Below, piece after piece: positions 35,651-52,837 of a DNA stretch of 64,000 nt. Source of the DNA: Saccostrea echinata (taxonomy: Eukaryota); NCBI RefSeq assembly GCF_033153115.1, contig NW_026889758.1, forward strand, positions 42,160,001 through 42,224,000. Reading direction: 5' to 3'. The notes beneath the pieces are model-generated. The model made no database searches. It worked only from the letters and a program-made list of their open reading frames with translations, and had not been told where the DNA came from. Both the position numbers and the translations under genes were made by a program. The first letter of the stretch is position 1; the number at the start of each line of letters is the position of its first letter.

Positions 35651-38600
35651 TCATGTTTGTTGATATCCATAGTATGCTTCTGAGAGTGCCTTATTTTTCT
35701 CCACACGTCTCTTGACGTGCTGCATTTTATTGGATGCCCCAGATAATTTGCAGGCAGACTTCATGACATTGGTCTGCAGAACAGCTGTGTCCAGGTCTGA
35801 GAAACCACAAGCTGACAAAGAACTTGCCTGTGAAAGAACAAAGAATGCTAAATACAAGCAATATGCATACAAAATTTCTATTAAAAGCAATATTCATTAA
35901 AATCAATGACATGATACAAGTTTAAAATACAGCTTTTATATGTCAACACTCAAATAAATGTTTTTTTAATTACATGTGTATCTGTGTCAACATTCAAATA
36001 AATGTTTTTTAATTACATGTGTATCTGTATTTCATCATTAAATATAATTTAAGGTATCTGTCTTCATTCAACCATGCAAATTGTTAGCAGAATGTATTAG
36101 CCATTTTTAGTTTGTTTTATTAGGTTTTATTCTGTTTTGAGCCAGTTTTCCACCTTACCTGTCTTTCCTTATGAAGCTTATTAACTACTTGTGATAACGA
36201 TCTGCTCTCCTCAATAAATGCTACTTTGTCTTCCCGCTGTTGTAAATTTTTGGATCCTTTGGAAATCATGCTTCTTGAAGACAATCTATCAATATGAATT
36301 AAAGGGACGACTTCAGAAAAACTTTGAAAAAAAACTAGAGATGTGTTTTGTTATTTAACTAAAACATACATTACACCTTTATTGTAAATCAAAGATCAAG
36401 GTCATGCAAGAACATCATGATAGCATACATAAAGCATCCTTATATGATGACTAGACGTCTAGATTAAATTTAAAGACAAACAAGCAAATTCAGCGAAGTG
36501 TAATCCTAGGCTTTCGGTGTCTTAGTGGTTGGGATGCAATTGTTTATGGCATATTGTAACTGTCTTGTTTGTGTGTCCTGTCTTGTCTGTCCCTCATACA
36601 AAGAAGATATAAATTTTTGAACGAATAAAAGATTAAAGCTTCTCAAAACTGTATCAATCATCAAGGTCAAAAATAATAATACAATCTGAAAGATCTTCTC
36701 ACAAGTAATGCACATGTGAACAAATATGAAAGCCTCATCTCTTCTGGAGCAAAAATTATGGCCAAAGTTAAATTTTTTGATAAGAAGGTCAAGCTTCTAG
36801 GTCAAGGTCATAAAGTCAAAAATGATAATTCTTTCTGTGAAGTGTTGTCATAGGTAATGTACAGGTAATATATGAAAGCCCTATCTTTTCTCACTCAAAA
36901 AAAAAAGGACTGTAGGTTAAACTTTAAGGTCAAGGTCAAGAGGTCAAAAGCCAAAGTTCATTTGGAAAGGTCTTGAAATAGGTAATGCACATGTCAAATA
37001 TAAAAGACCTTCACTCATTCAAAAGTTATCAACATTGTTCAATTTTTTGAAAATTAGGTCAAACTTCAAGATCAAAGTCTCAGGGAAAAAAATCATAGTA
37101 CATGTATGTACATTTAGAAAGGTTTTGTCAAAGGTAATGCACATGTGGCACCCTATCTTCTCTAATTCAAAACTTATCATTAATGTTATAATTTTTGAAA
37201 ATTATGTTAAAGTTCAAGGATATGAGGTTAAAAATAATAGTACATTTTTCTTGTCACAGGTAATGCAGTTGTAAAACTGTGGATGCCTTATCTTTTTCTC
37301 CTTCAACAGTAAGCAGCAATATAATTAATGATACATATTTTTTAAATTAGGTCAAATTTCAAGGTCCTAAGGTCAAAAATCATAGCATGTTCAGAAACAT
37401 CTTATCACAGGTAATGCACATGTTAAATATGAATGCCCCGTCTTCTCTCATATAAATGTTATAAGCAATCCTATTCTATTCTTGACAAAGAATTCCATAC
37501 AAAGTCCCTGAGAAGGATCCTAAGAATATCTTGGCCCAATACCATCTCAAATAGGACCTTCTCAACAGGTGTCAGCAAGAGGATATGGCCACAATCATCA
37601 TCAGAAGACGTTGGAATTGGCTTGGCCATGTACTTAGAAGGGACTCAGACAGCATTATAAAGACAGCTCTCTTCTGGACACCAAAGGGAAAACGGAAGAG
37701 AGGAAGGCCCAAAGTCACTTTGCGGCGGACAGTGGAAGCCAGAATAAAAGAACAAAAGAGAAGTTGGGGCACACTCCAAAAGCTAGCCAGTGACAGACAT
37801 GGATGGAGAAACCTTGTTACTGCCCTATACACCAAAGACATCACGAGCAGCAAGAAAGTAACTGTAAAAGAGATGTTAACTTGAAATTCAAAGAATTGTT
37901 GTCCCCTGCTTGTAAGGTCTGATTGCTTGAGGTGCAATGAGGTCTGATTGGTTGAGGTGTAATGATCAATCTATGGCATATTGTAACTGTTCTTGTCTGT
38001 CTTGAGGTCATAGTACATTGAGAGGTCTTTTCACAGGTAATGCATATGTGGAAAAAATATGAAAGCCCTATCTTTTCTTATTCATAAATTATGACCAAGT
38101 TCAAAGTGTTTTGTGGGACAAGTTTGCTCAGATAATCTTTCTTGTCGAAGAAAACAAGTTACTTGATTCTGAGTGAAACATCAAGATTATGCAGGTCATG
38201 ATAGATGTATAGTACCACATGACACAACTTATAAAAAGAAATAAAGGAACACAAATGATTATGAAAGAGAACCAGAGGTTTCTGACAAGACTGCAGCTCT
38301 ACTGGTGTGTACCTATACTAAAGAAAGATGTATCTTAGTATAGTCTTCTTATATGTCAAGTCTAAATGAAATCCAACCAAAACTGTAGCAAGAGTAATGT
38401 TTTGAAAGAATTTCACAGACATTTCTATACACAGTAAAACATGGCAACTTCCACTGTTGAAATCAAAAACTGATATATTGAATTATTAATATTGTCTACT
38501 TGTGTACTAAGCTCAATTCAAACTTGGATCTATTTTTAGTAACCATGGCACCACCATTTGTTGAAATCAAAAATATCGACTGATGCATCTTTGCATAGTC

Positions 38601-41600
38601 TACTTGTGTACCAAGTCTGATTGAAGTTTGACCAAAACTGTAGGAGGAGAATTTCAAAGAAATTTCTATTTTTAGTATTCATGGCAAAATCCTTTGTTGA
38701 AATCAAAACCTTACATAGAATTATGTATCTTAGTATAGTTTACTTGTATACCAATTCTTATTGAAATTGGGCCAGAACTGTAGTAGGAGTAGAGTTTTGT
38801 TTTCGAAAATTTGTTTACAGACAGATGGATAGAAGACAGACCAACAGGTGGACAATGGACACCTAATTAAATGCATAAATTCTTCTGGTCTCTGACCAGT
38901 AGAGCTATAAAATGAAAAGTGAATGGAAATCACCACCACCACCTGAATAAGGTGTAATAAAAAAATCAAATTAAAACATTAATTTTTTTTAACTTACAAT
39001 TTTGAGCGAGCATCTTCAATATCTCCTTTACTGGCCAAGTAAGCAGTCTTCTGGACTACAGCAGTGCCAACCACATTTACATTCATTGCCTATAAAATTT
39101 AGTAGTGGATATCTGTTAATTTTATATATATATGAGACTGATATAAAATATTTTTTTAAAAACTGATTTAATTTAAATTATACTTTTAATATCAGTTATT
39201 ATGATGAAACAAACTATTGGCAAGATAACTCCAAAATCTCTCTGATTTTAAGAGGAAATTAAACATTTCTGTTCAAATGTGATTACTGATAAATGTAAAT
39301 AATGGAAAGTGTTTGTTCTTGGCTTTATAACAGTTTAAAGTTGTTGTTTAGTTTGATGATTTCAAAAATATTAAGGTCTTCATTGGTGAGATAATAGCTC
39401 CTGTCACTTACTTTTCATGTGAAGGCTAATTTTTTAAAGATATTTTTTTATTTATGCCAGATCTAAAAAAAAATTTCAAAACTATGAGTTTACATACTTC
39501 CTCCATGGTCTGTCTGTTGTCTGTGGTAGATAGTGCTTTACTAATGGTTCTCAACATGTTTCTGCCATCCTTTAGTGTGTAAGAAATCTGTACCTATAGA
39601 AGACAAAAAGAATAAAATGTGCTGTAATTTGTAAATTACTAGATCAAACTTAACAAAGAGTGAATGTAATGAATCTAATACAATGTACAAAGTAAAATTA
39701 CAACAAAAAACAAAACAAAACCAAATAAAAAAACCCAAAAGCCTGCAAACTTTGTCAAATTAACACCTGTATCAATAACTAGATTACTGTGAGCAAGCTC
39801 ACAAAATTATACCCCTCACTGCAATTAAAAAATGCCTATATACAATTTTCTAAATGTGACTTTGAACTTGCCAAGATGCCTTGGTTTAAAAAGAGACACC
39901 CTCTTGTCAAAAGCAATCGTTGTGTGAAATATGGACATCCAATCTTTTTCATTTGAATTTTACATTTTTATTCTACCAGTGACCTTGAACTTGCCAGAAT
40001 GATCCTTGATCAAGGTTACAACATACCCTCAACTCCATATAATCTTTTTGGAGTATCAATGAGAGAGTTATGAACTGGGCACATTTTATATGTTTCTGCC
40101 AGTAACCTTGAATTTCCCAGAATGACCTTGGGAAGGTCATGTCACACCCTCGGGTCATAAGCAATCTTTGATAAGTATGAACTTCTAATGTTCTGCATTA
40201 CAAGATATGGTCAGTACATGAATTGAACATTTTGTAAAGGTGACCTTGAACTTGATAAATTGACCCTGGGTCACTCAGGATCATGACATACCTTCAGGTC
40301 ATAAACAATCTTTGTATGAGGTATTAACTTCCAATGTTTTTCTATGAGGAAGTTGAATCTTAAACTTTTCTGCCAGTGACCTTGAACTTGCCATAATGAC
40401 CTTGAGTCAAGGTCAAGACACACCTTCAGGTCATGAAGAATCTTTGTATTACAAGTATGAGCTTCCAATTCTTCTCCATTACAAAGTTATGGCCCAGACA
40501 TGATTGCACAGACAAACAGACAGACAAGGTGATTCCTATCCATCCCCCAAACTAATTTGCGGGGTCATAAATATTGGCTTCAACAATAAGTAGGGATTTA
40601 TATACTATATTAAGTGGGCATAGAAACATATCCATTGGATACATTCCCAAATGGTATTTGTACTCCAACATTAAAGGAATAATTAAATGTACTTGAATTA
40701 TTAACTGACCTAGAAATTTTGAAAAATGAAGTTCAAGATCATAAAAAAGGTCAAGGTCAGAACTCTGTTGTGTAGCATTCACAAATATATACCTTAGTAT
40801 GAAATTTGACTAAAATATCTTGAAAAATACAGTTAAAGGTCGTAGGAAAAGTCAAGGTCAGAAAATTACACATACAGTATGACACAGTTGAATAGCTTTC
40901 CTAAATTTGTATTATCAAGGTATGAAGTTTGATGAAAATAACCTGGAACAGTTTCTTTGAAACTAAGGTAATTGCAAAATAAGGAATAATGACATCAAGG
41001 TCGAAGGAAAAGTCAATGTTAGAACATTATGACAGTTGAATAGCTTTCACCAGAATGTATCAGTGTACGAATTATGATAAAAATATTTTGACCAGATTCT
41101 TTTAACCTGAGCAAAACACAAAGTGTGATGGATGCACAGAGAAATGGAAGGACAGAAGACAGACATGACAAACACAATATGTCCATGCCATAGTCATGGT
41201 GGGTGGGCATAAAAATGTTCACAGTAAACATGCTTATAACAAAGTACCAGGACAGAAGATTTTGCTTCCTTATATGCATAATTCATTATATTGGTTAACA
41301 GGTTAAGTTTACAATATTTTTTTTAAGTCATGGGGAATGAAAATTACTTCACCATAAGTATCAATTCATTACAAGTGTGTTTGCTATAAGCATGTTTTAT
41401 TGTATCTAGCTATGGGGCTCATATAAAAATTTTCTTTGTTGCCTTTGGTGAAATGCAACCATTTTCTCCTATATGTTTGTAGATAAGGATGCAAATGGTA
41501 AACACAAAATATTTTCATTTTAGCCAGATTTTGAATTCACTTAGACACTAAAAAACAGGTTTCTGATTTCCTTACTTGGAATGGTATTTTTTCAATGTCC

Positions 41601-44600
41601 AATTTTTTCCCAGGATTTTTCAACTTAAATGAGAATGTCATATCAGTATCTTTTGTAGCACTGCCCACCTCCTTAATTATCTTGCTACTGCCCTGCAAAG
41701 AAAAAATATATACCTGGTACATTTTAGTATCTATGTATTATTACTAGGGATGGCAATTTCTAACCGGTTAACCGATTACTCGGTCGGAACGATGGCAATC
41801 GGTTAGATAAACTGTAATCGGTTAGTCGAAAAAATTTTTAATATGTGTAAAAATGAAGGCAATCTTCTTAAAATCCATTTTTAAAAAAGAAATTCCTTCT
41901 TAAACGTTGATAAGTTCGCGTTTTCATATATATATATTTATTTAGGCTGATTGGGGGGAAATTATGGCTCTCCAGATTAAAATTATGGGGTAATTGGTCA
42001 GTCCGAGATGTGTTAATTACTGTTCAAACATCGTTACCCCGACTGTCCTCTAATTCTTTAATGATACTAATCGCCGTTGGGCACCGTGAACTGGTGTGTG
42101 TATCTTTTGCAGTTATTTATCAAATTAAATTATTAAACAAACATTGTAAATTAAGAGATACAGTTTAATCTTAGTTTTGATTATGGTGACAATGAAGAAT
42201 GAACTTGTGTGACATCCGCTCTGGAAAATTATCTACGATATCTCAGGCATGTTTCATAGTTTTCTGATTTTTTTTCTTGTCTACTGTAATAAAAAATATA
42301 TGCTTGTACATGTAGTTTTCTGATCAAGAATGTTTTTGACCTCTAAGATGTTTTTTAATACTTCTTGTGCGTGGGAATAGAACTTCCTGAAAAAAGTCAA
42401 GAAAATGTATAGTTTGATACGATTAACCGGTTAATCGGTCAGAACGTTTTGCGGTTAACTGATTAGCAATTCTGTATTCGATTGCCATCCCTAATTATTA
42501 CACTGAAAAATTTAGACAAGAGGCCAATGGACCACAATGCTCATCTGAGTCACTTTGGCCTGCTGTTTTTCATCTCCAGTATCTTCTAAATTTCCATCTT
42601 TAATTTAACAAAATTTCACTGTTGAGTACTGTGAACTGAGTGCAATGTGCATCTATCTTTTGCAGTTATCTGTCAAATTATATTTTTAAACAAACATTGT
42701 AAATTAAGTAATAGTTCAGACTCTGTTTCTTTTTTATGATGACAATGCAACCATGGCCTTGTGTAACATCAGGTCTGAAAAATTATCAATATCTTTGATA
42801 TCTAAGGAATGTTTCATTGTTTTCTTGATTTTTTCTTGCCTTCAGAAATTGAAATAAAATATTATAATATAAAGAACACTTACCAAGCATAAACAGACTC
42901 TTACTAACATCTTTGTTAAGTTTTTTCTTAGGGTTTACGTGATAAAAAAAGGTCAGGAAAATGTGTATTTTGATACGATTAACTGGTCAGAATGTCTTGA
43001 ATTAACCGATTTCCAATTCTGCATTCAATTGCCATTGTATTTAGACATCTATTTTATAAAAAGAAGTTTTACTGAATGTTAAATGTTCGGTGAAAAGAGT
43101 TTTTCAATTTTCTATTTCAAATACAGTTGAACTTCTGTATCTCGAACACCGATATCTTGAATACAATGGATATGTCAAAATGATTAAGAACTCCCAACCA
43201 CTTATTTTATAGGTATTTTCCCCTTGATACATGTATCTCGAATCCTCAAATATCTCAAAGTTTTTTCTCAGTCCCATCGAGTTCAAGATAAGGAAGTTTG
43301 ACTGTTTGTTAGGAATAATAACCTTAGGGAACCTAGGGTCATCAACTTCCAGCTCTGGATGGAGAAAAAGAGTGACCGTTACATATGTAGCGATGACATA
43401 ATTTTGCGAGATGAGTCGAAGCTGCCGAGAAATTTCCAGGGGATTAAGCACATTTACAGTGCCTCCAGAAATATCTGCACATTTGCTAACTTTCTCCAAC
43501 CCAGTTCTCTCCCCTTCCACAGCAAGAATGGAAATAGTTATGTTCTTCTTTTTGGCATATTGCCCAGCCTTCAAAAGAGAAATGTACATTGATTCAAATA
43601 TGTCATACAGGAAACTTAATATTCTTTCTATCAACAGCAAATACATCTGTATATTTACTAATCAAGCAAAGACAAATTCATCAAAGCATCAACTCTGTGA
43701 TTTATCTTACCTCCACATAGAAATTTGGATCCCTGTTCAAATTGCCTATGCCTCCATTTGGTGCCCCATCAGTACATAAAATAATCTCAGATCCCACAGA
43801 ACCATTGACAATCCCCAAGGCAGCAGAAAGGGCAGGGCCGAGACTGGTACAACCCTTCGGTCTTAGCTTATTTACTTCAGTCACTATTTTCCTGAAAAGT
43901 GGACATAAATTTTAAGTAAATTTAAACAACTGATATAAAATGTATGTCCCTCTGTTATATAATCTTAACTTTCCATATAAATAAGTGTTAAAACATGAAG
44001 TTTCTGATTTTTTGATTTGCATGGGCATTGCCCTTAAAGTTACTGGTAATATGAAAGGGGTCTTGAGTTGCACAGTTTAATTATTTCAAATTTCTAAACA
44101 TTACACATTCAGTAGATACTGATCAACTCAATAAAGTGATCATACATTTTAATATATCTTTATACCTATAGAAATGGATGTCCCTAGTTTTTTTTTTTTC
44201 TAAACTACATGTCCTCAGTACATGTATTAATATATACATTTAAAAAAACACAGATAATTACTGGTAGGATTCTGTTAAAGGCTTGATCTGATGTTCTGTG
44301 GAATACTTTTCTCCGTAGTTCAGTAATGGCTCAAACTCATTATGGATGGTGGAAGGCACAGTTTGTATTGTGTTGTCTGAACAATCTCCATAGACCTCCA
44401 CCTTTGACTCAAATGTCAAGAAGATCACTCGCCGCTCTGGATTGTCCAGGTGCAGTCGCTCTAGCTGCCTGTATAAAATCATTATTATTGCTTTGATAAA
44501 AGAGGATATACTCATTTCTTTATCAAAAAATTATTGCTGAACCCTTTTTTCCATCATAAGTCTTTCTTCATTACCTTTTTCACAACAATTAAAGTAAAAG

Positions 44601-47600
44601 AGGAATAAAGAAACTACTAGATGCCTATTTACACTCTATCCATGCATTTGCTTATTTGCATCTGTGACACAAATATGTCACGTAAAGGTATCTATGTAAT
44701 GTAAATTTGACATACTGTATAGGGGATTAATTTCACGGGTTGTAATTTTCATGTTGTTCTCTCCTCGGACACGATCGCGGTTTGTTGAATTCGCGGAATC
44801 GGTATATAATAAAAGTAACCTCCTTTGTCTTTATCCGTGTAATCCATAGTATAGCTAGAACGACATTCATCAGCGTTATGTATTCACTTCACGAACAAGG
44901 TAGGTTTATATAAAATTATTAGATTTAGTAGTTAATTGATGATTAATCAAAACAAGTGCTGTTATTAAAATTTTTTGACTATAAACATCAAATGACTTTC
45001 CTATATGCTTTTACGATGAGTGCACATCTTTCCGAAGGTATAACATATTGCAGCGGGGAAAAAAAACACTGGACGCTAATAAATATATTGATGTAGGTAG
45101 ACATAATAATATCCTTTCATATCTTCAGCATATTCGATAGTTATCCGAATGATATTTTTTAAACCAAAATTTCCATAAAAACTAACACGCATAATGCTAA
45201 ATTGCAGGTAACAAATACACGTACGTGGTAACGTTACGCACGGGTAATCAAAACCCATGTCCCATGTGTTTTGATTGATGAAACATGCATCTATTAAAAC
45301 AGCTTTTAAACAATAAAAACAGGTCATTAGCTGCTTATTTGAATTAAAGTAAAGCGTGATAATTAAGATAATTGAATGACAACTACGCATACGTGTACTA
45401 CTCGTAATTACTGAAATAAATGATCACGTATCGTACGTATATATACCTATCGTAGTCTATTCTCAAATTTCCAAATAAAACATTGAGGTTTAATATTTAA
45501 AATTTATTCACTGTTTCTTGAATTCACGGATTTATTAACACAGTGAATATAGCAAATATTTACACCGCAAGTTATTTTCCCCCTATACAGTACATATACT
45601 TATTATGCTGGACATTGTAATTGTGCCTGCATCTATTGTGTTGAAAAGGCCACCTACTCCATTACCTTAGGAGTGCCTCTTGTATGGCCTGAAGTCGAGT
45701 AACACTGTTACTGCCAGAAGCATTCTCCCCGTCTCTCTGTCTCTTCCATTCAGCTTTAAAACAAGGTAAAAAAAAAAGTGTAGCTTAAATTGAATGGAAA
45801 CATACAACACTATAGTACTGTAAACCAACATTAATTTGCCCACTCAAAATCTAGCACTGTGACAGTCTTTCTCATGAACTGTGTAGCGTAACCATAAATT
45901 AGTGCATTTGGAGCCAAGCTTCTGTATACTGGTCCGTATTTATTTTAATCATATACGGTCAAACCTCGTTATCTTGAACTTGATGGGGCCAAGAAAAAAA
46001 ACTTCCCAGAAATCCAAGGGTTCAAGATATTGAAGGTAAAATACTTCAAAGATATGGTTAGGATTACCCAGTCACTTTGACATATCCATGGTATTCTTTG
46101 ATATCCATGTTCGATTCGAGATATTTGAGTTCAACTGTATTAGCATCTACTTAAGTTAGTTGAAAAGAAGAAACACAAAAGGCACTAAAATATGATAATA
46201 TTTCATTATTATACCACTAAGTAAGTTTACAGCATGTCAAGATGCCTGAATTATTATTTAAATCATAATAAACAATATGATTTATTTTTCTAGTTTTGTC
46301 TTTAGGAGCTAAAAATCGCACATTAACATAAGCACAAATTGATACATGTACATCTACAAGGTAAGTGCTTTCCTAAATTTCTTAGGTTGGTTATACAGTT
46401 GAACTTCAGTATCTCAAACTCCAATATCTCCAATATCATGGATATGTCAAAGTGATTTGGTTCCAACTGCTAATTGTTTAGGTATTTTACCCTCGATATC
46501 TCAAATCCTCAGATATATCAAAGTTTTTCCTTGGCCCCGTCAAGTTCGAGATGACAAGGTTTGACTGTACTTGTCTGATTAACTAGAAATATGTCCATAG
46601 GAAATGAAAACCCCACCCAGGGTTCATCAGTAATGCAACAAAAAAAGAAAAGTATCCTGATCACTTTTTTGTTTCAGATAAGGGTACATTATGATCAATA
46701 GTAAGGTCAAGGTCATGGGAAGCTTAAGGTCAGAAAATTATGACAAAGTTGAAAAGCTCTCACTTACCGATATATGTATCAAAATATGAAATTTGATTAA
46801 AATATCTTGATTAGCTTCTTTTAAATTGAGCTAAACGCAAACTGTGAAGGGTGGATATATGGAGGGAAAGAAGGATGGAAGGTGGAAAAGACCAAAGGAG
46901 GAAGACAGACATGACAAACACTGTATGGCCCAGCCATATTCATGGCAGGCATAAAAAATATACATTTAGTTCAGTTTATGACTCCACTGATTTAAATATG
47001 GGCTTTTTCAAGACAACCATAATGTATGATATAAATTTTGATTTTAAAATTATTTCAAAATATTTTACATTACAGAGTCTTTGAATTGTAAGGAGAGCTA
47101 GTTTAACGATTGAAATTAAAGACCTTTCCCTCTTATTCCATTTAAAATCATCAAAATATTACCTGCCAGTGAAAAATAATATGATTGTTAAACATTTGAA
47201 GGTTACCTTGTAATTCGGGAAGCTGTGTGACTCCCCCCATAGATCCACTGATATCCAGACAGTACACCACGTATCCACTTCCTGTTGTTGCTGGTTTTGT
47301 AGCCTCTGTCTTGTCAGTTTCTTTTTCTGTAGCAGCTTGCTCTTCTGGTGCAGAAAGGGCATAATCTATGGTGTCTGATTTAGGAATTTCTTCTTTTCTG
47401 ACCTCTGTGGAGACATTTTTATGTCCACAGAATTCACTGAAATGTTACAATGGTAAACCCAAAATGAAATAGCAATTCCCTCTCAGAGTAACAAAAGATG
47501 CACTGAAAACAGTTGTTCACAAATATTCATCTTAAAGAATAATTTCCAAATGTTTTACCCAAAATGAAATAGCAATTCCCTCTCAGAGTAACAAAAGATG

Positions 47601-50600
47601 CACTGAAAACAGTTGTTCACAAATATCCATCTTAAAGAATAATTTCCAAATGTTTTACCCAAAATGAAATAGCAATTCCCTCTCAGAGTAACAAAAAATG
47701 CACTAAAAACAGTTGTTCACAAATATTCATCTTAAAGAATAATTTCCAAATGTTTCATCTTATAAAATGAGGTTTCTATGTGGATTTTTTGGGGATTATT
47801 TCTGAATCTTTCTAATATTGTTTATGTGTTTGTGTATGTTAATTACATCAAATTGAGAATTTCAATGTAAAATGAAGCAGACATTTACAATTCATATTTC
47901 TTAATTTCTCATCGTACAATTTAAGAGATTGCAGATTTGAACAAAAGTTCCAAATCATTCATATTTTAGAATTCAGTGACTTTAGTATTACCAATTCCAC
48001 AACAGTTTGTCTCCATCTTGTTGTGTCTCAGAGATACAAGACAACACAACCTGACATCCATCGCAATACACCGGGTCACCCGTAGCAACATTGTCCATCT
48101 GATCAAGATCCTTCATGGACACCAGGATGACATTAGTGTCTGCTTTCTGACATTTTATGGTTTTCTTGGACTTGGTAGGTGATCGTATGGGTGGGGCTGA
48201 CTTCCGTCGACTTGGGGGCCCTCTCCTTGTGTCACCTCTCCTCTGCTGTACGGGTAAGTCTTCTGCTGTGGCTGACCTTGGTCGGGACAATCTACGGGAA
48301 AAGATTCCACTAATGGAGGAGATGAAACTTCGTACCCTGGACACTTGTTTTCTGGGTCTTCCTTGTTCTTCTAAAGTCAACATTTTAAAATTAAAGTCTA
48401 CAGTGCAAAGTTTTTCTTGGGGGGGGTGGGGTGTTTTGGTTTTTTTGGTTTTTTTGTTGTTGTTGAGAAAATAGGAAAATCAGCACAAAGTGTTACTTTA
48501 CCTCATAAATATTTCATTTATTCATGCTGCTGTGTACTTGGTAATTACATGTATTTTCAAGTGAAAAGAAAAAAAAAACTTTTGCAATTATTCATGCAGA
48601 GAGAAATGAAAGAGAAATTACAATGGCATCTTAAACTAATTTAATTCATCAGATTGAAAATACATGTAAATGGGAGAATTATCAAACGCTTATATCTTTA
48701 ACTTAATTATACACCTGTGTGTATTATTTATATTTCATAAATGAAATACCTTCCTCAGCTTTTCTTCGTTTTCCCTTCACTTTGACCATTTTACGATAAG
48801 AGTCTTCTATGGTTGGATCATAGTCCTCAACAAATTGGTCTGCTACAAATCTAAGTGTCAGTGAAGATTTTCCTACAGCACCAGCCCCGAGCATGACAAT
48901 CTGTGATAGACAATAAAAGTCATCTCTAATTTAGAGAGTGAAATAGCATACTTTTGAATTTGCCTGACAATATGCATTATTGTAAACCTTCTGAGATGTG
49001 AGAAAAAAGTTCTCTTACGTGGCTTTAAAATCTCATAATTAGGAAAACTGCATTGTGATTTTCAAAAATATTTTTCTTTTTATCTAGTATTTAAATCATT
49101 TTAGTTTACAAATATCATAACAGTGATTTTCTTTTAAGTAAATCAAATTGTCTTATTTAGCCAATCTGCTTAATATGCACAAGTTAAATATATATCTTCA
49201 TTTACTTTGTGTGTAGCTTTGTGTTCCGGAATTTCTAAAACCAGATTCTCAAATGCCTCCTGGACAAGGCTTCCTGTTTTTGCAGATGTTTCTGTAAAAG
49301 GAATACCCAAAGTATCTGCCAATTTCTTCCCCTCTTCAAATGATACCTCCCTCTGATGTTCAAGGTCACTTTTATTCCCACAAAGAATCTGTAAAATTAA
49401 ATCTTAAGCTTAGCATAATTTTCCTTTTTATTTTTTTTTTTATACATACATGTATATATAATCATAACCATGAACAAAACCTCTCTTAAGATTCTATAAA
49501 TACTTTTACTGGGCATAAAACACCACATCACATACTGATCAGTTTGCCCTTAACAATCACATTTACTTTATGCTTAATTAAAATTTGAAAAAAGAAGGTT
49601 TTTAAATAGGGATGTCAAATTGGTCATCTTTTGATCATCAGTTATTCGGACTATTTTCTGATCGAGAACCATGATTAAATGATGTTCATTAAAAAAAAAA
49701 ACTCCAAAAATAAAGGGCCACTATAAGTGAGAAAAGCTGTGTTCTAGTATATACACAGCCAAGGCCATGCAATAACATATAATTACTGGTGTAGGTAATG
49801 CTAATTACTGTATAGACATGGACATAAATTATTGACATTTTCTTAATAAGTTTTTGATAAATATATTTATACTTTGAAATATGAAAAATAAATGAGTACC
49901 AATTTTAGTATTCAATACTCAATTGCTATCTAATAGACCTATGAACTCTTTGTCTGCCATTTTTCAACCTACCGCAGGTGAATTTTCCATGCCTTTAATT
50001 TTCTGAACAAGACGATAAATGGCTGAAGCTTCATTGAAGGATGATCTGCTTGTAATGCTGTAGATAATCATAAAGCCGTCCCCTGATGTCATGTACATCT
50101 CTCTTGTAGAGGAGTACTCTTCTTGGCCTGCTGTGTCCAGAATATCCAAGCAACATGTCTGGAATCAAAGAATAAAAACCATGAGAACCATGTGTCCATG
50201 ATCTCCAAGCAATATATGTTAATCAAAGCATAGAAAGCATGAAATACATGAGTCTATGCATGATCTCCAAGCAATATGTGTTAATCAAAGCATAAAAAGC
50301 ATGAAATACATGAGTCTATGCATGATCTCCAAGCAATATGTGTTAATCAAAGCATAAAAAGCATGAAATACATGAGTCTATGCATGATCTCCAAGCAATA
50401 TGTGTTAATCAAAGGATAGAAAGCATGAAATACATGAGTCTATGCATGATCTCCAAGCAATATGTGTTAATCAAAGGATAGAAAGCATGAAATACATGAG
50501 TCTATGCATGATCTCCAAGCAATATGTGTTAATAAAAAAGCATAGAAAGCATGCAATACATGAGTCTATGCATGATCTCCATGCAATATGTGTTAATCAA

Positions 50601-52602
50601 AGGACAGAAAGCATGAAATACATGAGTCTATGCATGATCTCCAAGCAATATATGTTAATCAAAGGACAGAAAGCATGAAATACATGAGTCTATGCATGAT
50701 CTCCAAGCAATATATGTTAATCAAAGGACAGAAAGCATGAAATACATGAGTCTATGCATGATCTCCAAGCAATATGTGTTAATCAAAGCATAGAAAACAT
50801 GAAATTCATGAGTCTATGCATGATCTCCAAGCAATATGTTATTTTAATCAAAGCATAGATAGCATGAGACCCAGCTTAAAAAATGCTCCTTCACACCATG
50901 CTCACTAGCCCATTCCTCCTCCCCCCGAGATTTGTTTGAAGTTAAAAGTCATGAATACCAGAGTAAATTGATTCTGCGGTCTTTTTCTTCATTTTTTAAT
51001 ACTTTATTTACTGTAATAAACAATCTGTTACAACATTAAACAAATTTTAACATTTTTACAGACTGTGAATTTTGAGAGAGTTGGCATAATTTGTTTTCAC
51101 ATCTTTCATTTACATGAATAAAGATTGATTTTCTTCTTATTACAGATTTTAGCATAATAATAATTCCTCAGAGACCCACAGGTGATTATACCCTTCATTC
51201 CTCCCTAAATTAAGGTGAGAAGAATGAAGTTGAACTGTTTAGAGATCATGGGACCCAGGTTTGAATCCTGATCTGATTCTGTGGCTTAAGGCTGTATGCC
51301 TTCAAACCTGGGCCCCACGATCTTACCAACAATACTATCCGGCCACTGGTGATTGCATGAAGCTGCCTGTCCCCCTATTTTCCTCAAATGTATTTATACC
51401 CCTGCAATTAAGACACCAACCAAACCCTTGAGTTTCATCCCTAGCAGGTTTTGTACCTGTCACATCCATGAAATTACACATTAATATTAAATGTAACAGG
51501 GAGAAAATATATAGGACAGAATTGACCAGAATTCCAGCCTAGGCCTGCTGAACTCTAGACTTCTGAGATTTCTGACTGTAAGTGATCAAATTTGCCTAAT
51601 TTTATCTACATTATTTCTTAATATTTTGTTAGTATATGATTTAGAAAATAAAGCAGTGTGGCATAACATGTTTTAACTCCGGGCTTTTAATAGTTGGGTG
51701 TACATAAATTTACACCAAGCAAAATTTGTCTTACTTAAGCTACATAGGGAATAACAAATAGTATTTAAACTCTTCAGTAAAGGTATTTATAAACTCTTGA
51801 CTTTTTTTCTCTCAATAAGCTATATGCTTACATTTCAAAAGCTGTGAGCTGAAATGTGATCTCACTTGACTGAATTTTACCCGCAAAAGGTAAGCTATAT
51901 GTATGCAATCTCTGTACAATAAAAACCATAAATACCAGGCAATAAAAAAATTAAAATTCCGACGGATTTATGTATACTTCAAACTTCAAATAATCAATAT
52001 GTTAGATTTCAATCTAAAAATGAAAACCATAGGAAATTAAATGATAGTCTTAACCTATTGCAAACCATTAGAGAAATAAGTACATGCATATAAAATTGTT
52101 TTTCACATGTTTTCTATTGCAAACTGTACAGTAGCAAATCATGCATTTTTAGTATATGGAAAGTCATGAATAATCAAACCTAACTGCTTCAGTCTCTGTA
52201 CGTAAAGCAATTAAAGTGTAATGATAGAGAACAATTAAACCTTTAATGGATGTTTGACCTTATACCATGTCTGTACATAAATATAAAGCTCTGTTAAACC
52301 ATGCATATACAGCCAAACCTCATTATCTCGAACTCAATGGAACCGCAAAAAAACTTTGAGATATCCGAGGATTCGAGATATCCGGGGTAAAATACTTAAT
52401 AAGGGGTTGGGACATATTCATGGTATTTGATATATCGAAGTTCAACTGTATATTGAATTAATCATGCCATGAGTGTACAAACCTCTTCATCTCCATTTTG
52501 AGGATCAGCTTCTTCTTCCTTCTCCTCAAGATCATCTTCCTCAGGTATGTCCTCTTCCTCGTCTGTCCGACCAACGTACACAAGGTTTCCTCCAAACTCC
52601 AT
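35651..52602 (-). CDS. cpras1: Circularly permuted Ras protein 1-like (cpRAS domain + Sec23/24-type Zn finger + VWA + beta-sandwich/helical region), ~859 aa, 15 coding exons
   Basis: Exons 52602-52483, 50158-49973 (G3 DTAGQEEY), 49388-49206 (G4 NKSD, G5 ETSAK), 48900-48750 (G1 GAGAVGKS, G2 YDPTIEDSY), 48370-47992, 47436-47207 (CDGC...CEFC; YCLDISGSM), 45753-45666, 44468-44262, 43891-43711 (TSLGPAL, ILCTDG), 43568-43323, 41692-41576, 39593-39498 ([21 protein letters not shown]), 39089-38998, 36285-36159, 35827-35651. All junctions are GT-AG and phase-consistent with no internal stop. Confidence 0.9.
36640..38120. mobile_element. AAGGTCAAGGTCA-type satellite-carrying element in a cpRAS intron, interrupted by a LINE fragment
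   Basis: Several degenerate ~140-bp units (CACAGGTAATGCACATGT...GAAAGCCCTATCT) on both sides of 37490-37866. Related arrays at 39780-40570, 40700-41215, 46580-46935 and 20520-21000. Confidence 0.65.
37490..37866 (+). mobile_element. 5'-truncated RTE-clade non-LTR retrotransposon (3' end of ORF)
   Basis: [20 protein letters not shown], a frameshift, then [44 protein letters not shown]...WRNLVTALY, the typical RTE C-terminus. Confidence 0.88.
41745..42493. mobile_element. hAT-type MITE, complete
   Basis: TIR TAGGGATGGCAAT ... ATTGCCATCCCTA with perfect 8-bp TSD ATTATTAC (41737-41744 and 42494-42501); subterminal AACCGGTTAACCG repeats. An older partial copy follows at ~42610-43036. Confidence 0.9.
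43122..43306. mobile_element. Tc1/mariner-pogo-type MITE (TA-CAGT...ACTG-TA); family copies at 45954-46139, 46394-46569, 52308-52450
   Basis: Shared ~145-185-bp sequence with TACAGTTGAACTTC / GTTTGACTGT termini and internal ATATCTCGAA motifs, present in both orientations. Confidence 0.8.
44713..45592. mobile_element. Non-autonomous DNA transposon with TACTGTATAGGGG termini
   Basis: TACTGTATAGGGG at 44713 and CCCCTATACAGTA ending 45592; interior is CpG-rich relative to the host intron. Confidence 0.75.
47457..47756. repeat. 100-bp unit x3 tandem repeat in a cpRAS intron
   Basis: Units start at 47457, 47557 and 47657 and are nearly identical. Confidence 0.95.
50197..50866. repeat. 62-bp minisatellite (~10.5 units) abutting the acceptor of the cpRAS G3 exon
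   Basis: AATCAAAG recurs at 50221, 50283, 50345 and onward; unit CATGATCTCCAAGCAATATGTGTTAATCAAAGCATAGAAAGCATGAAATACATGAGTCTATG. Confidence 0.95.
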
Positions 52603-52837
52603 TACACTTAACACAATTTATTTTCTATAAGGAAATATTTACATTTTAATTTCTTTGTCCGAGATAAAACTACAAATAGTAAAAAATACTATATTTCTAC
52701 ATAAACTAAAAGCTACTGGTTCATCAATAGGCATGGTTAAAAAAACTGCGTGCAGTGTGGGACAGAGAGAGACAGAAGTATGGAAAGCGGGGATTGTACA
52801 TAGCATGTGAATTTACGAAATCAAGAGCATGTAAATA

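Follow-up and report, generated by a model that had tools for sequence, protein, structure and literature searches.

Can a Ras GTPase be encoded with its two halves in exchanged order and still be a real, expressed protein, and if so, what might such a protein do? The question is raised by a locus of the oyster Saccostrea echinata, lying in a stretch of 64,000 nucleotides (NCBI RefSeq assembly GCF_033153115.1, contig NW_026889758.1, positions 42,160,001 to 42,224,000 of the forward strand), hereafter the window, in whose own coordinates all positions are given. From the letters of this stretch, the original prediction held that three consecutive minus-strand exons, here called A, B, and C, encode a Ras domain with its motifs in the order G3-G4-G5-G1-G2, the order of the circularly permuted Ras (cpRAS) domain. 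No Ras-family domain with a permuted chain is known other than cpRAS, and one more expressed copy of it adds little when taken alone. We hold with high confidence that this gene is the oyster orthologue of cpRas1, a real spliced protein of 859 residues in which a permuted Ras chain leads into a Sec23/24-like module, with the GTPase likely to serve as a built-in switch.

Three exons encode a Ras domain with its halves exchanged

When the exons were scanned singly against the Pfam Ras model (PF00071), exon A matched positions 48-102 of the profile (E 3.7e-16), exon B positions 108-160 (E 2.6e-15), and exon C positions 2-49 (E 3.3e-13). The swapped order of matches that the original prediction had proposed as a check was thus found on successive exons, and since the E-values are this low, the permuted order is real and far beyond chance. 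Exon A corresponds to Ras residues of about 50-111 by the Pfam match and the KRas alignment, exon B ends with the junction residues as far as the start of strand 1, and exon C also encodes the beginning of a basic helix after strand 2. All three are bordered in the sequence by an AG acceptor and a GT donor. We would like to note that the exon-level searches were made with single exons, and that the whole-protein analyses described below were made with the database protein XP_061173237.1 (label P0156).

In a phmmer search of PDB chains, the top relatives of this protein were K-, H-, and N-Ras (E about 1e-42), each aligned in two stretches. Residues 38-159 align with KRas 47-167, and residues 161-206 then align with KRas 3-48, which agrees with the earlier claim that the chain is opened in the beta2-beta3 hairpin. 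Three marks by which Elias and Novotny (2008) set the cpRAS domain apart are found here. The motif order G3-G4-G5-G1-G2 lies inside one domain (Pfam and KRas alignment), affiliation with the Ras family includes the TIE motif in G2 (the PDB relatives, and YDPTIEDSY in the sequence), and the chain opens between strands 2 and 3, with helix 5 running directly into strand 1 (alignment limits, and a structural model with a helix at 144-154 and a strand at 161-168). The window is thereby confirmed to encode a genuine Ras-type GTPase with its halves swapped.

H-, K-, and N-Ras share with the oyster domain the effector loop, DTAGQ, NKxD, SAK, and the P-loop motif. They differ from it in that the oyster chain is permuted (Ras 47-167, then 2-48), sits inside an 859-residue protein, lacks a hypervariable tail and CAAX box, and has alanine at Ras position 13 (Ala13). 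Identification as a canonical small Ras GTPase was rejected, as the order is swapped and the C-terminus reads ..YYGYQQT, which holds no CAAX box; the N-terminus likewise has no Met-Gly for N-myristoylation. The YlqF/YawG (YRG) proteins are also permuted P-loop GTPases. In them the order is G4-G5-G1-G2-G3 and the chain is broken between strand 3 and helix 2, and they form a non-Ras, ancient group concerned with ribosome assembly (PMC2430557). Membership in that family was rejected because G3 (DTAGQ) precedes G4 in the oyster protein. The original prediction had already drawn this distinction and had taken the cpRAS family as known, and it was right on both counts, given the G3-first order and the RefSeq annotation described below.

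The gene and its transcripts

The whole gene comprises 15 exons on the minus strand, from 52602 to 35654, with a product of 859 residues (Table 1). Full-length relatives were obtained from a downstream exon (43568-43323) by a search of protein representatives, and tblastn with these relatives extends the gene to 35654. The product is the RefSeq protein XP_061173237.1 of S. echinata, 859 residues long and annotated as "circularly permutated Ras protein 1-like". Matching exact 8-residue words, the 15 window exons cover 858 of its 859 residues, the leftover residue being a split codon. Exons 1, A, B, and C are residues 1-40, 41-102, 103-163, and 164-213 of this protein, unchanged.

Table 1. Coding exons of the cpRas1 gene and repeats and open frame located in its introns (window coordinates; limits of exons 6 to 15 are at codon level, from exact 8-mer mapping and tblastn)
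Feature	Position	Strand	Content
Exon 1	52602-52483	minus	40 codons; ATG start, GT donor
Exon A	50158-49973	minus	62 codons, phase 0; Ras strand 3, switch II (G3, DTAGQ), helix 2, strand 4, helix 3
Exon B	49388-49206	minus	61 codons; Ras strand 5 with G4 (NKSD), helix 4, strand 6 with G5 (SAK), shortened helix 5
Exon C	48900-48750	minus	50 codons and 1 base; strand 1, P-loop G1 (GAGAVGKS), helix 1, switch I/G2 (YDPTIEDSY), strand 2
Exon 5	48370-47992	minus	short helix, basic Ser/Arg/Pro-rich disordered linker, two Sec23/24-like beta-sandwich strands (DTNV..), first half of 4-Cys zinc finger
Exon 6	47435-47208	minus	
Exon 7	45754-45668	minus	
Exon 8	44470-44261	minus	
Exon 9	43890-43711	minus	
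Exon 10	43568-43323	minus	
Exon 11	41692-41576	minus	
Exon 12	39593-39498	minus	
Exon 13	39089-38997	minus	
Exon 14	36284-36162	minus	
Exon 15	35830-35654	minus	
Minisatellite	50197-50867		62-bp unit, 10.7 copies, 95% alike; non-coding
Tandem repeat	47457-47755		100-bp unit, 3 copies, 97% alike
Open frame	37585-37884	plus	99 codons

Exon 1 encodes a conserved N-terminal strand motif (MEFG..VY), an acidic loop, and a remnant of the beta2-beta3 turn (..NGDEE). The content of exon 5 was read from the contig pieces described next, from the strands at residues 284-298 of the structural model, and from a zf-Sec23_Sec24 match at residues 313-347. The ten downstream coding exons (35654-47436) encode the remainder of the zinc finger, a VWA/Sec23 trunk with a motif resembling a metal-ion-dependent adhesion site (MIDAS), a beta-sandwich, and a helical domain.

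Contigs from public sequencing runs, placed on 47800-50190, were used to follow the splicing. The runs X1-X4 come from two studies and represent at most three samples. Their spliced contigs contain the joints 49973|49388 and 49206|48900, the two junctions that the original prediction had singled out for checking, and also 48750|48370, in each case on the minus strand and with a GT..AG intron skipped. Single contigs, among them ones of 1499 and 3003 letters, span exons A, B, C, and 5 in order. Past 50160, the spliced contigs have a loose end whose letters, reverse-complemented, are those of the end of exon 1, which shows that splicing joins exon 1 to exon A. All four junctions (exon 1-A, A-B, B-C, and C-5) are present, in this order, in four runs. 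Because the joints lack introns and fall at canonical sites, we take the contigs to derive from cDNA. Of the words sampled from 47950-50200, 20-27% occur in runs X1-X5, close to the fraction of this stretch that is exonic. Exon C occurs in a single copy in the 923-Mb genome, the next match being 60% identical and located in ordinary Ras-family genes. The gene is real, single copy, spliced, and expressed.

These data also bear on the suspicion that the swapped order is an artefact, in which a local mis-assembly moved the G1/G2 exon or the three exons never share one mRNA. It is ruled out by the spliced contigs and by the sequence of 47900-52700, which is free of gaps and contains no N bases. 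The single contigs running from A through B and C to exon 5 come from two independent studies, and the failure of co-splicing or mis-assembly that the original prediction had named as grounds for abandoning it did not appear. More than 150 proteins of other species show this order as well, some of them as full-length open reading frames in contigs of roughly 3.6 kb that were assembled from public sequencing runs of Magallana gigas, and the RefSeq model is identical. Nothing was found in favor of such an artefact, and we regard its probability as negligible.

Active site and junctions of the permuted chain

The equivalences to Ras are Q52 for Q61, G170 for G12, A171 for G13, K174 for K16, and T193 for T35. 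The effector loop YDPTIEDSY is identical to that of KRas, and DTAGQ, NKSD, and SAK are present; the P-loop reads GAGAVGKS where KRas has GAGGVGKS. The KRas alignment therefore agrees with the earlier claim that G12, K16, T35, Q61, NKxD, and SAK are retained, that the effector loop is canonical, and that position 13 is alanine. Across 101 full-length relatives, the equivalents of D57, A59, G60, Q61, E63, N116, K117, D119, and A146 (the Ala of SAK) are invariant, as are those of G10, G15, K16, F28, D33, P34, T35, I36, and E37; the G12 equivalent is kept in 100. Position 13 is Gly in 78 of these relatives, Ala in 21, and Ser in 2. The earlier suggestion of an active GTPase fits these invariant motifs, from which the domain would be expected to bind and hydrolyze GTP like Ras and to act as a nucleotide-dependent switch; such activity is also assumed for the cpRAS family in general.

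At the joint between the old C-terminus and the old N-terminus, K159 (Ras K167) directly precedes the equivalents of Ras T2-E3-Y4-K5, so the connection between helix 5 and strand 1 is built from native terminal residues only. The original prediction had described a very short linker at this place; in the alignment, helix 5 passes into strand 1 and no linker is added. A proline at the Ras-164 position, present in 90 of the 101 relatives, terminates helix 5 early. The Arg that follows this conserved proline in 86 of the 101 relatives has been lost in oysters, and the protein studied here has Glu instead. At the new ends of the domain, remnants of the beta2-beta3 turn are found on both sides, ..GDEE before strand 3 and ..VKG after strand 2.

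An AlphaFold2 model of full-length XP_061173237.1, generated on the alignment of the 101 relatives, has a predicted local distance difference test (pLDDT) of 84.6 and a predicted template modeling score (pTM) of 0.85. Its elements follow the order b3-a2-b4-a3-b5-a4-b6-a5-b1-a1-b2, with pLDDT mostly above 90. Among the matches listed in fold searches with the full-length model (Foldseek and VIA-align), the places are filled by Sec23/24 and VWA chains and no Ras row is included; the Ras fold is assigned by sequence alignment and by the order of secondary structure elements.

The remainder of the protein is a Sec23/24-like module

Pfam searches of the protein retrieved zf-Sec23_Sec24, Sec23_trunk, and VWA_2, as well as Sec23_BS weakly. 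Foldseek retrieved Sec23 and Sec24 chains with E about 1e-23 over 600-670 columns, and VIA-align superposed the model on Sec23/Sec24 with Z about 24, about 480 residues aligned, and a root mean square deviation (rmsd) of about 5 A. This structural match is carried by the C-terminal 580 residues. In a comparison with the five domains of Sec23/Sec24, of which the C-terminal one is gelsolin-like, the oyster match spans the zinc finger, trunk, beta-sandwich, and helical parts. The best VIA-align neighbor of the whole model is PDB chain 9ya0_GF, a Toxoplasma pre-conoid ring P2 protein (Z 24.2, 497 residues, rmsd 4.7 A), which is tied with Sec23 and Sec24.

In the alignment of relatives, the zinc-finger cysteines C316, C319, C340, and C343 are conserved. 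The VWA/trunk region, encoded by exons in 43711-47435, has a MIDAS-like DxSxS..T..D motif at residues 401-405, 530, and 556; at least 90% of the 101 relatives have the first Asp and both Ser of DxSxS, and T530 and D556 are invariant. Such a site suggests metal-dependent ligand binding. Similar to the COPII inner coat, in which Sar1 acts with Sec23/Sec24, the oyster protein combines a small GTPase with a zinc-finger, trunk, beta-sandwich, and helical module. It differs from that system in that the GTPase belongs to the Ras family and not to Arf/Sar, that it lies in the same chain, and that the VWA domain keeps its MIDAS-like motif.

The Ras domain and this module are separated by a linker, residues 220-278, that is rich in Ser, Arg, and Pro and is predicted to be disordered (pLDDT below 50). 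This linker is strongly basic and contains several sites of the Arg-Arg-x-Ser type (RRLS, RRKS), which could be kinase targets or could form part of a lipid-binding patch.

The N-terminal strand and a proposed place of insertion

In the 2008 paper of Elias and Novotny (PMC2430557), the N-terminal region of cpRAS-VWA proteins is called poorly conserved and without recognizable homology. Among the 101 relatives, M1, F3, G4, S5, V8, and Y9 are each present in 68 to 86. The residues of this N-terminal motif have pLDDT of 90-96 in the AlphaFold2 model, and VIA-align pairs residue 1 of the model with Sec23 residues 12-17. We then predicted the complex of residues 1-216 with residues 279-859 as separate chains, which gave an ipSAE interface score of 0.71, the best control reaching 0.01. 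Of 78 solved complexes, 51 attained that mark, as did 2 of 108 mismatched pairs. The runs agreed on at least 67% of contacts, and the partner had pLDDT of at least 70. Only residues 1-21 belong to the confident interface; they contact residues 282-298, 680-738, 760-764, and 826.

A similar beginning is found in VWA paralogues that have no Ras domain (P0067, P0121, P0145, P0117, P0126, and P0096). These start with the same motif, MEF-x-S-K-F-x-Y, followed by an acidic stretch, a long disordered loop, the DTNV strand, and the zinc finger. Judging from the model, the first 20 residues or so appear to be a strand of the Sec23/24-like beta-sandwich. The simplest reading would then place the GTPase within a loop of the Sec23/24-like fold and not at its front, with an acidic tether (about 18 residues) on one side and a basic tether (about 65 residues) on the other.

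Family membership and distribution

The cpRAS-VWA family was described in 2008 by Elias and Novotny (PMC2430557), with carriers in Dictyostelium discoideum, Strongylocentrotus, Branchiostoma, and Amphimedon. Proteins of this type have an N-terminal region of 40-66 residues, the cpRAS domain, a linker, a 4-Cys zinc finger, and a VWA/Sec23 trunk, and are 840-970 residues long (PMC2430557). The oyster protein shows the same architecture, with a 40-residue exon 1, the disordered stretch at 220-278, the four cysteines, the trunk and VWA matches, and a length of 859 residues. The G3-G4-G5-G1-G2 order, TIE motif, short N-terminal region, disordered linker, zinc finger, and VWA/Sec23 trunk are common to the family, and nothing essential differs in the oyster, its small differences being Ala13 and the Glu in place of Arg after the helix 5 proline. 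By BLASTP, XP_061173237.1 is collinear with the D. discoideum copy (32% identity, E 4e-122) and with the S. purpuratus copy (37% identity, E 1e-171). This full-length collinear similarity to founding members is what we looked for as a sign of orthology, and the oyster protein groups among molluscs in a tree of the C-terminal module. The feature is already known and annotated, an orthologue of cpRas1; the identification holds but is not new.

The motif order is shared by more than 150 relatives. The name "circularly permutated Ras protein 1(-like)" is annotated in oysters (Ostrea, Saccostrea, Magallana), scallops, mussels, and many gastropods, and also in Lingula, Lineus, Owenia, echinoderms, Ptychodera, amphioxus, and sponges, so that brachiopods and nemerteans are covered as well. 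Relatives that do not bear this name are found in Capsaspora, choanoflagellates, amoebozoans, heteroloboseans, and a few agaricomycete fungi. The 2008 list of carriers (PMC2430557) did not include molluscs, in which the protein is now widely annotated. According to a 2026 paper, CPRas may date to the last eukaryotic common ancestor, and in a study of circular RNAs in abalone CPRas is a table entry. Our literature searches found no functional work on cpRAS in animals, in line with what the original prediction had stated.

In one RefSeq model from the scallop Pecten maximus (P0159, 1058 aa), the G1/G2 set occurs twice and G3 comes late, as if two tandem copies had been fused or wrongly joined in the gene model.

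Six proteins from Archamoebae (P0102, P0269, P0230, P0270, P0271, and P0236) were found to have a Ras domain at the same place in the normal order from G1 to G5. Three are from Pelomyxa schiedti, one has Mastigamoeba-type gene ids, one comes from a transcriptome, and one from a metagenome. They share the N-terminal motif, the zinc finger, and the VWA module with the permuted family, and in P0102 the Pfam Ras model matches over 1-160 in one stretch. A quick tree of the C-terminal module, from which three of the six were dropped by a zinc-finger filter, placed the other three together (support 100) within the permuted group, beside a Balamuthia protein, with weak deep branches. The normal order in Archamoebae may be either a reversion or the ancestral state.

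Possible function of the permuted GTPase

In the mechanism that we favor, the Ras chain begins at the beta2-beta3 turn, extends from strand 3 to helix 5, goes on with strand 1, helix 1, and strand 2, and passes via the basic disordered linker into the zinc finger, VWA trunk, beta-sandwich, and helical domain. If the model is correct in this respect, the GTPase would be a loop insertion in the scaffold, flanked by the acidic and the basic loop. Its most likely role would then be that of a switch belonging to the scaffold itself, as with Sar1 on Sec23/24, rather than that of a free lipid-anchored Ras. That a Sec23/24-like scaffold occurs together with a complete Ras active site suggests an adaptor under GTPase control, so far unstudied; oysters, sea urchins, and Dictyostelium are workable systems.

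Some points limit this account or weigh against it. In the prediction of the complex, the Ras body was not confidently placed on the Sec23/24-like module; this null result is not evidence against contact, and a Sar1-like contact with its own scaffold would be possible. The gelsolin-like domain, which carries the arginine finger in Sec23, appears to be absent here, as most rows of the structural alignments to Sec23A stop at about residue 617 and the Pfam gelsolin model has no match on the protein. Alanine at position 13 departs from canonical Ras and from 78 of the 101 relatives. Rac and Cdc42 have alanine at this position and are active nonetheless; Ala13 need not impair catalysis and is weak evidence against activity. 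Lastly, the RNA nature of runs X1-X4 is our guess, the cDNA origin of their contigs being read from the intron-less joints.

A different role, which we think rather unlikely and which is compatible with that of a built-in switch, would be that of a Ras-like transducer, in keeping with the suggestion of the original prediction that the domain could engage Ras effectors or GAPs. The permuted domain would bind canonical effectors through their Ras-binding or Ras-association domains (RBD/RA) and be under the control of GTPase-activating proteins of Ras (RasGAPs) and Cdc25-type guanine nucleotide exchange factors, the Sec23/24-like half being a cargo or localization device. The effector loop, identical to that of KRas and with the equivalents of D33, E37, D38, S39, and R41 kept, speaks for such a role. 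From amoebae to animals, the 101 relatives keep it invariant or nearly so, which speaks for recognition by a conserved partner, and the switch face was not confidently buried in the predicted complex. However, in switch II the equivalents of KRas residues 66, 67, 69, 70, 73, and 74 are changed, some of which we take to be SOS contacts, and the protein has no lipid anchor. The chain also exits right after strand 2, the strand that pairs with an RBD, which may hinder access, and literature searches found no interaction data for cpRAS in any species. Much less probable still is a pseudo-GTPase, a Ras fold that no longer cycles and is retained as a spacer or binding platform; we consider this very improbable. 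Ala13 would be consistent with it, as would the loss in oysters of the Arg in the conserved Pro-Arg pair between helix 5 and strand 1, but the catalytic and nucleotide-binding residues, including the equivalents of Q61, T35, K16, S17, NKxD, and SAK, are all present and invariant in the family, while pseudo-GTPases normally lose several of these.

Returning to the built-in switch, we put forward tentatively, as something possible rather than probable, a more specific origin for it. Ras would have been inserted in the first loop of a Sec23/24-like coat-adaptor, a loop that is empty in the paralogues without Ras, and the permutation would put both of its ends at one hairpin tip. The outcome would be a self-contained Sar1-like switch and adaptor in invertebrates and protists, with the normal order in Archamoebae either reverted or ancestral. 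The insertion topology and these normal-order relatives offer handles on how a GTPase came to be permuted and on whether the order of its chain matters to its function.

Repeats and a probable mobile-element fragment in the introns

The introns of the gene contain the repeats and the open frame listed at the end of Table 1. The minisatellite, detected by Tandem Repeats Finder (TRF), lies in intron 1, with about 38 bases between its end and exon A. Its unit derives from the junction of intron 1 and exon A and is homologous to some 38 bases at the end of the intron together with the first 22 or so of the exon. The copies have AAC at the place of the true acceptor CCAG, and the transcripts use the true acceptor only. 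The 100-bp tandem repeat is located in the intron between exons 5 and 6. The open frame on the plus strand, also within an intron of the gene, resembles the C-terminal end of a non-LTR retrotransposon protein and is probably a decayed fragment of a mobile element.

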